A stretch of 64,000 bases of DNA from Laetmonice hystrix (taxonomy: Eukaryota), in NCBI GenBank assembly GCA_965235115.1, contig OZ249437.1:27156001-27220000 (forward strand), read 5' to 3'. Below the pieces are notes generated by a model. The model was not told the DNA's origin. It ran no database searches and was given only the letters and a program-made list of their open reading frames with translations. A program made the translations under genes and the position numbers. Positions 18,976 through 23,280 of this stretch are shown here, piece by piece. Position 1 is the stretch's first letter, and every line of letters starts with the position of its first letter.

Positions 18976-19749
18976 GTGTTTATTAACGGTGTTGTGTGTC
19001 TGACCACCTGGTGTATTGTTCAGGGTCTGTACTCGCGGATCACGTTCCGGGAAGATCTGTACTTGGGTGGTTACAAGAACACCACAATGATTGGGGAGAG
19101 GACTGTGTTTATTAACGGTGTTGTGTGTCTGACCACCTGGTGTATTGTTCAGGGTCTGTACTCGCGGATCACGTTCCGGGAAGATCTGTACTTGGGTGGT
19201 TACAAGAACACCACAATGATTGGGGAGAGGACTGTGTTTATTAACGGTGTTGTGTGTCTGACCACCTGGTGTATTGTTCAGGGTCTGTACTCGCGGATCA
19301 CGTTCCGGGAAGATCTGTACTTGGGTGGTTACAAGAACACCACAATGATTGGGGAGAGGACTGTGTTTATTAACGGTGTTGTGTGTCTGACCACCTGGTG
19401 TATTGTTCAGGGTCTGTACTCGCGGATCACGTTCCGGGAAGATCTGTACTTGGGTGGTTACAAGAACACCACAATGATTGGGGAGAGGACTGTGTTTACT
19501 AACGGTGTTGTGTGTCTGACCACCTGGTGTATTGTTCAGGGTCTGTACTCACGGATCACGTTCCGGGAAGATCTGTACTTGGGTGGTTACAAGAACACTA
19601 CAATGATTGGGGAGAGGACTGTGTTTATTAACGGTGTTGTGTGTCTGACCACCTGGTGTATTGTTCAGGGTCTGTACTCACGGATCACGTTCCGGGAAGA
19701 TCTGTACTTGGGTGGTTACAAGAACACCACAATGATTGGAGAACGGACT
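18976..19749 (+). repeat. Six tandem copies of a 129-bp unit: 48 nt intron end with acceptor plus the first 81 nt of the LG1 exon
   Basis: ttgttcag|ggtctgtac acceptors open at 19024, 19153, 19282, 19411, 19540 and 19669. Copies 1-4 are identical; copies 5 and 6 carry a few substitutions. Confidence 0.97.
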
Positions 19750-19861
19750 GGAATGAGGTGGGGATTCGTCGGCTGTGTACGACTGCTGGAGATCAACAAT
19801 CGCAAGTACGACATGCGCAAAGGGGCGTTTGTCGGCGACGCCATTCACGGAGTGGATGTGG
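19669..19861 (+). CDS. EGFLAM: EGFLAM exon, end of LG1 (GLYSRITFREDLYLGG...GFVGCV...GVDVG), using the most downstream acceptor
   Basis: Phase 0 acceptor and donor gtaagt at 19862 (phase 1). LYLGG and GFVGC are LG hallmarks. Which of the six acceptors is used cannot be told from the sequence. Confidence 0.85.
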
Positions 19862-22023
19862 GTAAGTGTTTGTGTCAAATAAAACCCCTGCTGACGGTTT
19901 ATGAAATAACGCTACCGCTAGCTGTGACCGCTCGTAATGGCCAGACAAAAGTGGTGCCTGGCATCCTGTTTAGTTGGACGTTGCCAGTCTCAACGTGGAA
20001 ATAGAAATACACATGGAGCGTGTCAATGTGTCAGAAAGGTTGAACTGTTACGGTTCAATCGACCTACAATTCTGAAGGCAATGTATTTTTTTAAACCTGG
20101 AGCTGTTTGTGTCAAGTATAAATGTACTCATGATTGTCAACTTTGGCCAACTCGGTTTGATTTGTTCCGAATCGATGGTGGAAGGTATCCAGAGTCGCAG
20201 GACGTCTGGGTGTCAGGTTTTCATTGCTGATTGCCCAAAGTTGACCTAATCATGGGTCTTATACAAGGCACTGGGAGTGACCGATTATGATTATTAGCAC
20301 CATCATCTTTCTGTGGTCGATGTTTGCACCTCCCACCCCCTCCCCCTTCCCTCACTCTTATCTTGTGACAGAACCCCGTGTCTCGACCCCAACCAACGAG
20401 TCTCTCTTCACACGTGTATGCATGTGCCGCCAAGTGACACATCTGCGCACCCACACGAAGCCTGCTCTAAGAACATGCTCAGGTTTTTCTTTACTCGCAT
20501 GATGAACACGTTGTTCTCTCAGTATGATCCTCTTACCACCAGTAGCACACAGAGCAGAGCTCACAGAGCCCCGAACAATTACCGTCTGGTTAGTGAGCTA
20601 CCCACTGTCTGTCTGAATCTCCCGGGATTAGCAGTTCCCCCCTGTAGAGTGACTACTTCTTCATTAACCTTACCATGCACATCCCTCAGAGACGCCCGTG
20701 TGGTCCCAGCTAGGTCCCGCCAGACAGGCTCTGTCCAACTGCTCCCCCACCCTATCGGAAAGGTCAACATACAGTTGTCGGAACCCAAAGCCTGGGAAAC
20801 ACATAGCACAGACCGCCATGACTAATGGCAGGGAGAGAATGAGAAGTGCCGAATTAGCTGGCCCTTGAGCCCACTGCTGGGCCTGGGTTGTCATTTGTCA
20901 ACAGTGAAGTCGGCGGTCAGGGCACATGGTCCACAGTGAGACTGAACGATAATGGCCGCTGGATATATATGCTTTGTCTACCCAATGGTGTAGCGCTTTG
21001 GTAAGGATTCCACCGTAGATTAGGGTCAATATTTCTAGAACGTGGCACCTATCTCGACCGATTCATCGTGCACATATGTGATTTTTTTTCTTAAATCGAA
21101 CCAGTCCTTTTAAATGATAAGTAGCGTCTTAAAATTAATCCGAGTTATAACAATGTACAAGAAAATCAAACTTGAGTAGACTCCTCAAAACAAACATTCG
21201 GTCTGATGGATATAAATGTAGATACATAACTTAATTATGGAATAGTATTGATTAATTATTGCCGATTATGCCATTTGTCTGTACAAATAGTAAGAGAATC
21301 TAACATTTTAAATATGATTCCACAGATCTCTTTATAATTCATGAATGTCTTGTGTCTTACCCAATACTAGATACATTATGAGAATCTTATTATAATTCAT
21401 ATCAACATATGCTAAAACGCTAAGCATTTGTCTTCAGCAGTAATGTAGGATTTCGTAATAGCAAAGAAGAAGAGAATGATTGTCATTTTGAACGTTTACA
21501 TATCTAAAACGCTTCATCAAAGCAACTAATATAATGTATTTATCGGTATAATAGTAATTGGTTAACGACTACGGACAGCGACAAGGTTCCACCCACCCTA
21601 TGTTTGCACTGTATTTGCACAAACCTAGCTTTATCACCATATTCTGGTCGAATTGCAACAAGATCTGAGAGATGGCACCCTTTGTGCTTTACGTCAAGGA
21701 GGCAGGAGCGATTTGGATTTTGAGGGGGCTAAATTCATTATGTCTTTGTCCTAAAACTGATATTCCTGGTGTAAGTAGTGTACCGGGTCTATTTGCACAA
21801 AACGGTAACAGACTTTTAATCAGATTGTATAACAACAGATAATAGTAGGACTATTTTCTTCATTTTTAGGTTAGATTCCAATAATAAATGACTTGGGGAG
21901 AGAATCAATGTTTGTTATTGACCAGAATATGGTGTAAAGCCAGTGAACGTGAGCCTCATTGCTCTGCCCTCACTGCACCTGCTAACCGACGCCATGTTGT
22001 TTCTTGTGCTTTCGCCCTCACAG

Positions 22024-22026
22024 AAG
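22024..22026 (+). CDS. EGFLAM: Candidate 3-nt microexon (AAG) of EGFLAM
   Basis: Branch-like gctaac (21980-21985), AG-free pyrimidine tract with TGC at 22007-22009, then cag|AAG|gtacgt. Frame-preserving in a phase 1 intron. Confidence 0.5.
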
Positions 22027-22889
22027 GTACGTGCTGCGGTTAAAGCCACATGTAAGGAGTTTGCCTCATGCTAGCCCGTAGGCGTCTCACAAAAAAATCA
22101 TCCTTGCATGCCACATTCCTCCCATCGATGGTTTACCTATACATGTCCATACTTATATATGTATCTCTCGATGTATGTGTGTGACATGGTTCCGATGTTA
22201 CAGCAGCATGATAGGTGGGCGAGGTGTTACCACTGCCCCGGCTGGGTTTGACGTCTACCGTCCATAATACCATGATAATGATAAACGCTTTATCAGGGGA
22301 TCCCACTACTACATCCGGGTGTGGAGATGACGTCAGGCGGGTGGGATTGTACTGCGCATGTGTCGTCCACTAACCAATCAGTTAGCTAGTTCTACTGCTT
22401 GAGTGTCCGATATTCTCACGGTGTTCTTCTGCCAGTTATTTGTATATATCTGTTTTTCTGTATATATATATGCAGGACATGGACCTGTTGCACAGATAGC
22501 GTCTGCTTGACTGAAAACGTATAGGAAGCTCGTTATGGGGGTGGTTTGCAGAAATAGTTTTTTAAAAAAGTTACCTTTTGTTTTAACACTTATTGTTCGT
22601 GCCTTTTTTTTAGACTAACAACTTAAGATTGATTTGTCTGTCATATTTCTATTTTATATTTTTTTACCGTCTTATCGATTCATCTGCGTCACTAAATGAC
22701 ATGTCTTCATGTACAGCCTTAGATCATGTTTTCTTTTCCCGTTCCACGGAGTTCGGTTGACGTTCTTGAAAGCGTCAGTTCTTGGTTTTTCATCTGTTTC
22801 CGTGCAGATAATTAGAATCGTGATTTGTACTTTTTCCACCAACTCCTCCTGTACATGGGTTGTCTGATGATGTTTGGTGCGTGATCCAG

Positions 22890-23015
22890 GGGAGTGCTCC
22901 AGTGGAGTGTGTGAGAAGGTGAAGTGTCAGAACGGCGGCTCCTGCGTGGCTGACTCGGCTGACAGTCACGTGTGTCTGTGCCCGCTGGGTACGGCCGGAG
23001 ACAGGTGTGAAAATC
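22890..23015 (+). CDS. EGFLAM: EGFLAM exon, EGF-like domain 2 (GECSSGVCEKVKCQNGGSC...CLCPLG...RCEN)
   Basis: Acceptor tccag ending 22889; donor gtgagt at 23016; EGF cysteine spacing; phase 1 to phase 1. Confidence 0.93.
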
Positions 23016-23280
23016 GTGAGTACCAAACGTCAGCCTGGAGTCGTCTGAGGTTTTAGGCCCTATGACGTCATGGAAACTATGACGTCATTTGTCGAATACG
23101 GTATCTCTTTGTTTTGGCGATAAAAAATGATGGCGTAGATAATCGTAGATGTATCATCCGCGTACATTTTTTAAGTAGGCATGCTGGGTAAGATTTACGC
23201 TGTAAATAGGCCTATATTATTATTATCAAAGTTGGGAAATGACGTAGATTGGTAACATTTAAACTTGTGTTATATTTCAG

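Follow-up and report, generated by a model that had tools for sequence, protein, structure and literature searches.

A conserved splice-signal module around a candidate three-nucleotide exon in the pikachurin-like gene of Laetmonice hystrix

Exons of three nucleotides are established in cytohesin (PMC6314551) and in NCAM and fly troponin T (PMC8042270). In cytohesin-1/2 (an extra Gly in the PH domain), mouse NCAM and Drosophila troponin T (an extra Lys), a single-codon cassette is provided with full splice signals; when it is included, the reading frame is maintained and one amino acid is altered, within a linker or a structured part of the protein. The AAG trinucleotide described here, in a 64,000-nt stretch of the Laetmonice hystrix genome (contig OZ249437.1, positions 27,156,001 to 27,220,000; hereafter the window), resembles these exons on each of these points. 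It differs from them in that the known exons were seen in cDNA, with the function of the cytohesin exon tested, while the AAG candidate is predicted from DNA; moreover, it belongs to another gene family and, as far as sampled, to one worm lineage.

A second arrangement to which the locus can be compared is the ratchet point. In Drosophila, ratchet points consist of an ultraconserved acceptor and donor with a short cryptic exon, the RS-exon, downstream of them; this exon is poorly conserved, generally out of frame and has a downstream donor at its end, and the stronger of the two donors wins (PMC8605326). The downstream half of the conserved block at our locus fits this RS-exon design (Joseph et al.; PMC8605326), with the proximal donor stronger than the distal one. 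The points of difference are that here the best acceptor and donor lie 3 nt apart rather than juxtaposed, juxtaposition occurring only at a weak second AG; that the intron is 2–3 kb rather than tens of kb; that the cryptic exon is 28–31 nt long as against about 50 nt in Drosophila, in a spiralian rather than a fly; and that the expected outcome is one added codon, where a Drosophila ratchet point adds none.

The third relevant class is that of the fly eMIC microexons, in which AG is excluded over a long zone, the pyrimidine tract is long, the CUAAY branch site is strong and a UGC is found near the 3′ splice site (PMC8797185). It is the upstream half of our block which fits these eMIC/Srrm234 (SRRM3/4) microexons (PMC8797185), with CUAAC in the window and AUAAC in the related locus L002. 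The candidate is also like them in being no longer than 27 nt, in having a length that is a multiple of 3 and in belonging to a host gene that acts at synapses, whereas its 5′ splice site is strong and those of fly eMIC exons are weak. The y and z sites of agrin and SS1–SS6 of the neurexins provide familiar cases of short, regulated inserts that fall within laminin-G and EGF modules or between them; these inserts comprise 4–30 residues and lie mostly in LG loops. The candidate Glu would be an insert in the same superfamily, but of one residue and at an LG1/EGF junction. NAGNAG tandem acceptors likewise offer acceptors 3 nt apart, as CAGAAG does here; normally a long exon gains or loses its first codon according to which of them is chosen, while here the choice would decide between a 3-nt and a 0-nt exon.

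The AAG occupies 22024–22026 of the window in the context ccctcacag/AAG/gtacgt, on the plus strand, which is the sense strand of the coding intron in which it lies. Full-length homologues, of 600–930 residues, map exon by exon onto 7084–37629 in the order LG1-EGF-LG2-EGF-LG3, and carry the names pikachurin or pikachurin-like in their sources (vertebrates, insects, spiders, molluscs, nemerteans, a brachiopod and a starfish). For the LG1c-EGF-LG2a part the best annotated match is that of Lingula, at 64%. When the first LG1 exon was compared with solved structures, agrin LG1 was the best match, followed by neurexin and pikachurin. From the LG-EGF-LG-EGF-LG part and the homologue names, the host gene is identified as pikachurin/EGFLAM-like; pikachurin is a dystroglycan-binding synaptic matrix protein. 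The original prediction had named these three bases, at this position, as lying between LG1 and EGF2 of a pikachurin orthologue, and both the letters and, by the exon mapping and homologue names, the context are as it had them. The features of the intron and of its two flanking exons are the following.

19669 to 19861, plus strand: last LG1 exon, phase 1, ending GAT GTG G/gtaagt; placed by translation and by tblastn of pikachurin orthologues
21916 to 22073, plus strand: the only conserved block of the intron, aligned with 3331–3494 of L002 at 74% over 171 columns
21982 to 21986, plus strand: branch-point consensus CUAAC, 42 nt before the candidate exon; the aligned bases in L002 are AUAAC
21990 to 22023, plus strand: pyrimidine-rich tract (23/32 pyrimidines) and acceptor cacAG, its AG at 22022–22023
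22024 to 22026, plus strand: candidate 3-nt exon AAG, invariant in L002/L003
22027 to 22032, plus strand: proximal donor GTACGT (AAG/GTACGT, 9.4 bits), invariant in L002/L003
22047 to 22067, plus strand: distal block CACATGTAAGGAGTTTGCCTC, 21 nt invariant, with the donor-like CAT/GTAAGG (G at 22052)
22105 to 22110, plus strand: UGCAUG (Rbfox-type motif), 79 nt after the proximal donor, within the aligned invariant TTGCATGC
22890 to 23015, plus strand: EGF-like exon, phase 1 at both ends, starting cag/GG GAG TGC, GECSSGVCEKVKC

The host intron is 3,028 nt long and is divided by the AAG into 2,162 and 863 nt. With phase-1 exons on both sides, skipping gives D-V-G-E-C at the LG1/EGF junction (junction sequence GATGTGGGGGAGTGC) and inclusion would give D-V-E-G-E-C (GATGTGGAAGGGGAGTGC), precisely the change that had been proposed; taken with the preceding G and the following GG, the candidate exon reads GAA GGG, Glu-Gly, with the frame kept and no stop. 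The tandem acceptor of the original prediction is also present, since CAGAAG is a NAGNAG whose second AG abuts the GT.

A separate feature of the locus is a six-copy tandem array with a period of 129 nt (43 codons) at 19015–19740 of the window. Each unit duplicates the acceptor of the last LG1 exon together with the opening ∼80 nt of that exon, and in the assembly the copies lie at 19015, 19144, 19273, 19402, 19531 and 19660. Logan contigs contain a joint at the array that goes back 129 nt, and the word depth of the unit is about 10 times that of the single-copy flanks, so the array may exceed its assembled length or differ between haplotypes.

The strength of the AAG site was judged by scoring AG-NNN-GT sites with a crude weight matrix for acceptor plus donor, the frequencies of which came from general knowledge. 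On this scale the AAG site reaches 16.1 bits and ranks first of the 424 such sites in the window, where the next scores 11.2; it takes first place again when 1,838 sites from 528 kb of strand-bases of the genome are ranked (mean −7.5, sd 6.3), and it clearly goes beyond chance. The AAG region is single-copy in the genome, and is thus not a repeat. Apart from the AAG site, scores above 12 bits were reached in the background only by a single tandem repeat (L027; G000:C2:20500001-20510000, minus strand) of ∼850 nt, each unit of which has cag/GAG/gtaggc, 13.7 bits.

Taken singly, the parts of the site are also strong. The CAG acceptor of the AAG scores 6.7 bits and the acceptors of the real exons on either side 2.1 and −1.1, whereas the second AG, that of the AAG itself, scores only 0.8 as an acceptor. 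The gene's own real donors score 5.3 and 8.5 bits, which is below the proximal donor, and the distal CAT/GTAAGG, at 7.9 bits, is weaker than the proximal donor too. Upstream, the pyrimidine tract comprises 22–23 pyrimidines in 32 across the window and L002, a conserved UGC (22007–22009) stands at −17 in the window and −18 in L002, and the AG-exclusion zone before the acceptor AG extends over 68 and 73 nt, respectively. Downstream, GCATG is found at +80 in the window and +77 in L002.

An RNA gene or structure was rejected as the basis of the element, as Rfam gave no match at E ≤ 1 for the element region and folding gave no signal on either strand (z −0.5 to +1.1). A hairpin that pairs the pyrimidine tract with ACAGAAGGUACG can be drawn in L002; in the window the register differs.

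Three runs of one sample contain 73–90% of the words of 19600–23100, a stretch which is ∼90% intron, and so represent DNA. In the Logan DNA contigs of these runs the site is covered, with no difference among those listed, although the assembly may have been built from these contigs, which are therefore not independent support for the site. Among the differences listed for the contigs none falls at 21894–22090, while the flanking intron has one per ∼50 nt; with 21 differences outside the list, this gap weakly fits constraint in the population.

Related loci were found by exon-sized open reading frames matching the LG1c and LG2a exons. L002 and L003, two runs of one species (Logan DNA runs ERR14368248/9), are sister to the window in a three-exon tree, with support of 88/90. 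The distance between the two species is considerable: the last LG1 exon is 89% identical in amino acids and the exons are ∼76% identical in DNA, but third codon positions are only 39–41% identical and four-fold sites agree at 9/46, which indicates that neutral sites are saturated between the window and L002. Against this background, a blastn search in which the whole intron was compared with every related locus returned a single match, the block listed above. Within it the 15-nt core TCACAGAAGGTACGT is invariant between the window and L002/L003, and inclusion in L002, where the intron is 2,312 nt long, would also read G/AA G/GT, that is, Glu-Gly.

The pattern of conservation downstream of the core is uneven. 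The distal donor-like block lies 25 nt downstream, and the spacer of ∼20 nt that follows the proximal donor is poorly conserved and carries indels. Acceptor and distal donor together bound a cryptic exon, 22024–22051, of 28 nt here and 31 nt in L002, which in both species is in the +1 frame with a stop (EGTCCG-stop here, EGT-stop in L002).

The block is absent from six more distant loci (L004, L005, L008, L009, L010 and L011), and the evidence for selection rests, as a result, on one pairwise comparison, though a very deep one. The introns of the relatives without the element measure 0.44–4.1 kb. No comparable AG-N(0–30)-GT was present in those six loci except L005:10742, a zero-length AG/GT (ttctttgcag/gtgatt, 12.8 bits) in the orthologous 1.3-kb intron, which was set aside as it does not align to the element. 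The intron comparison leaves out L006, L007 and L034, the contigs of which end short of the intron. It also leaves out P0275, which among the relatives is nearest to the window; its LG2 exon is 95% identical and its contig (ENA ERZ26222911) measures 296 kb. In a further relative, P0008, LG1c and EGF are contiguous in one open frame, both outer ends of which run into intron-like sequence; this contiguity suggests that the host intron is absent there. A metagenome scan with a two-part pattern gave no match. A 19-mer search of metagenomes gave one contig, L033, which was rejected as a chance match because it has no upstream core.

That these splice signals are conserved while neutral sites are saturated is strong support for a functional splice element, and we regard the AAG element as very probably a working one. 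The original prediction had left the choice between a single-codon exon and a recursive AG/GT site, and it is borne out in part: the conservation speaks for a functional splice element and the recursive alternative fits worse, but no annotated orthologue carries the extra residue.

We consider it somewhat better than an even chance (a probability of roughly 0.55) that the AAG is a lineage-restricted 3-nt cassette microexon which adds one Glu, turning DV-GEC into DV-E-GEC. All 15 invariant bases of the core agree better with a microexon than with a ratchet point of zero length. An exon of three bases leaves no room for U2AF/U2 and U1 at the same time, and it follows that the acceptor would be paired with the distal donor in the first instance. 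The exon would then probably be recognized stepwise, by way of the 28/31-nt cryptic exon, in a manner of the recursive-splicing type. On this scheme the acceptor (CUAAC, the UGC-bearing tract and CAG) and the distal CAU/GUAAGG would define the cryptic exon; the upstream intron would be removed at the CAG; and the stronger proximal donor, AAG/GUACGU, would subsequently be joined to the EGF exon, so that only the AAG would stay in the mRNA. Such a stepwise mechanism would account for every invariant base. That the AAG itself is spliced, the order of the steps and the tissue concerned are all points which we infer from the sequence. The original prediction had held that a 3-kb intron makes recursion less likely. 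The length itself is correct, but the conserved distal donor-like block makes stepwise splicing of the recursive type more plausible than that argument allowed.

Two motifs suggest control of the Srrm234/eMIC type together with Rbfox, and hence neural inclusion: the UGC close to the acceptor and the UGCAUG ∼80 nt downstream. The genome also has a match to PF15230 (SRRM_C), of 29.9 bits against a cut-off of 27 and covering 27 of the 67 model positions. It is a single match, at G000:C18:20459758-20459838 (L032), and is probably the eMIC-bearing end of a Srrm234 gene. More tentatively, we suggest that a recursive-splicing design may have been reused here for the insertion of a single codon, with the distal donor setting a 28–31-nt RS-exon which resplicing would trim to AAG. 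If this were true, the element would be intermediate between zero-length ratchet points and microexons, it would explain in general terms how an exon of 3 nt can be defined by the spliceosome, and it would place recursive splicing in a spiralian, outside the flies and vertebrates where it has been studied.

The microexon reading has to be set against what is known of the junction in other animals. Across ∼170 annotated or assembled pikachurin orthologues, from vertebrates to molluscs, the junction conforms to [DN][VI]-x-[ED]C and never varies in length, and an extra residue was found in none of them. As isoforms that differ by one residue would merge in protein libraries clustered at 90% or 50%, this negative is a weak one. 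With no variation in junction length, an insert would have to be an innovation of the lineage of the window and L002 in a tightly constrained hinge. An invariant linker further means that an insertion could be harmful, which would favour a reading that adds nothing to the mRNA. In the literature searched we found no paper linking pikachurin to a microexon or to a one-residue insert between LG1 and EGF.

The reading that adds nothing is a zero-length recursive site, in which the second AG of CAGAAG would be joined to GTACGT and the intron would leave in two steps with the mRNA unchanged. AG and GT are indeed juxtaposed at 22026/22027, such a site would leave no trace in the protein and the extra residue is absent from every orthologue compared, and the combination of an ultraconserved acceptor/donor core, a poorly conserved, out-of-frame 28/31 nt and a conserved downstream donor is that of the RS-exon (PMC8605326). 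However, ratchet points are mostly located in long introns (PMC8605326), whereas the introns concerned are 3.0 kb here and 2.3 kb in L002; recursion has no obvious purpose in an intron of 2–3 kb, and relatives manage without the element in introns of 0.44–1.6 kb, P0008 even appearing intronless at this place. The acceptor raises a further difficulty, since the poor AAG, at 0.8 bits, must beat a CAG of 6.7 bits three bases upstream. Normally it is the AG nearest downstream of the branch site that is chosen, and a conserved CAG in that position would do a ratchet point harm. Finally, the donor regenerated after the first step, TGG/GTACGT, would have 5.8 bits, less than the 7.9 bits of the distal donor, and the competition rule would then include the poison exon. 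We consider a ratchet point improbable on these grounds. It is also rather unlikely, in our estimate, that the unit from CAG to GTAAGG acts as a whole, as a regulatory cryptic, poison or decoy exon of 28/31 nt whose stop leads to NMD, or which stalls splicing, and so tunes pikachurin output, any AAG-only product being a by-product. The boundaries of the unit are conserved and its interior is not, and it is in the +1 frame with a stop in both species, as such cryptic exons are generally out of frame (PMC8605326). What this leaves unexplained is the invariant, strong GTACGT after the AAG, and competition between the donors would normally remove the cryptic exon.

Two other explanations depart further from a cassette exon. 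The block might be a conserved non-coding element, such as an enhancer or a protein-binding site, with a coincidental likeness to splice sites. Conservation alone is no proof of splicing, and the block is common to two lineages only; yet the invariant cores match the splice consensus base for base, at the best of 1,838 sites, Rfam and folding were both negative, and the pattern of indels is unlike that of coding sequence. We think it unlikely that the match to splice signals is a coincidence of this sort. The acceptor might, alternatively, open an alternative terminal exon encoding E-G-T-stop and so yield a truncated, secreted protein with LG1 only, which would suit the EGT and early stop common to both species. 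In the window, AATAAA and ATTAAA are absent within 600 nt downstream, the only such signal of L002 has no counterpart in the window, and a terminal exon gives the distal block no reason to resemble a donor, and we regard this as very unlikely indeed.

Annotation almost never includes exons of three bases, and their recognition is poorly understood. By its sequence, the AAG element is a conserved splice-signal module with a recursive-type architecture that can be read unusually clearly: branch site, UGC-bearing tract, acceptor, both donors and UGCAUG form a set of signals kept between species whose neutral sites are saturated. It thereby provides a compact minigene for testing the stepwise, recursive-type definition of a 3-nt exon. 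Should the AAG not be included in RNA, the element would still be a conserved intronic splice regulator, a ratchet point or a decoy exon, in an unusually short intron. If the microexon reading is true, this lineage would have a splice switch of its own in the LG1-EGF hinge of pikachurin, a hinge otherwise fixed in length across animals.
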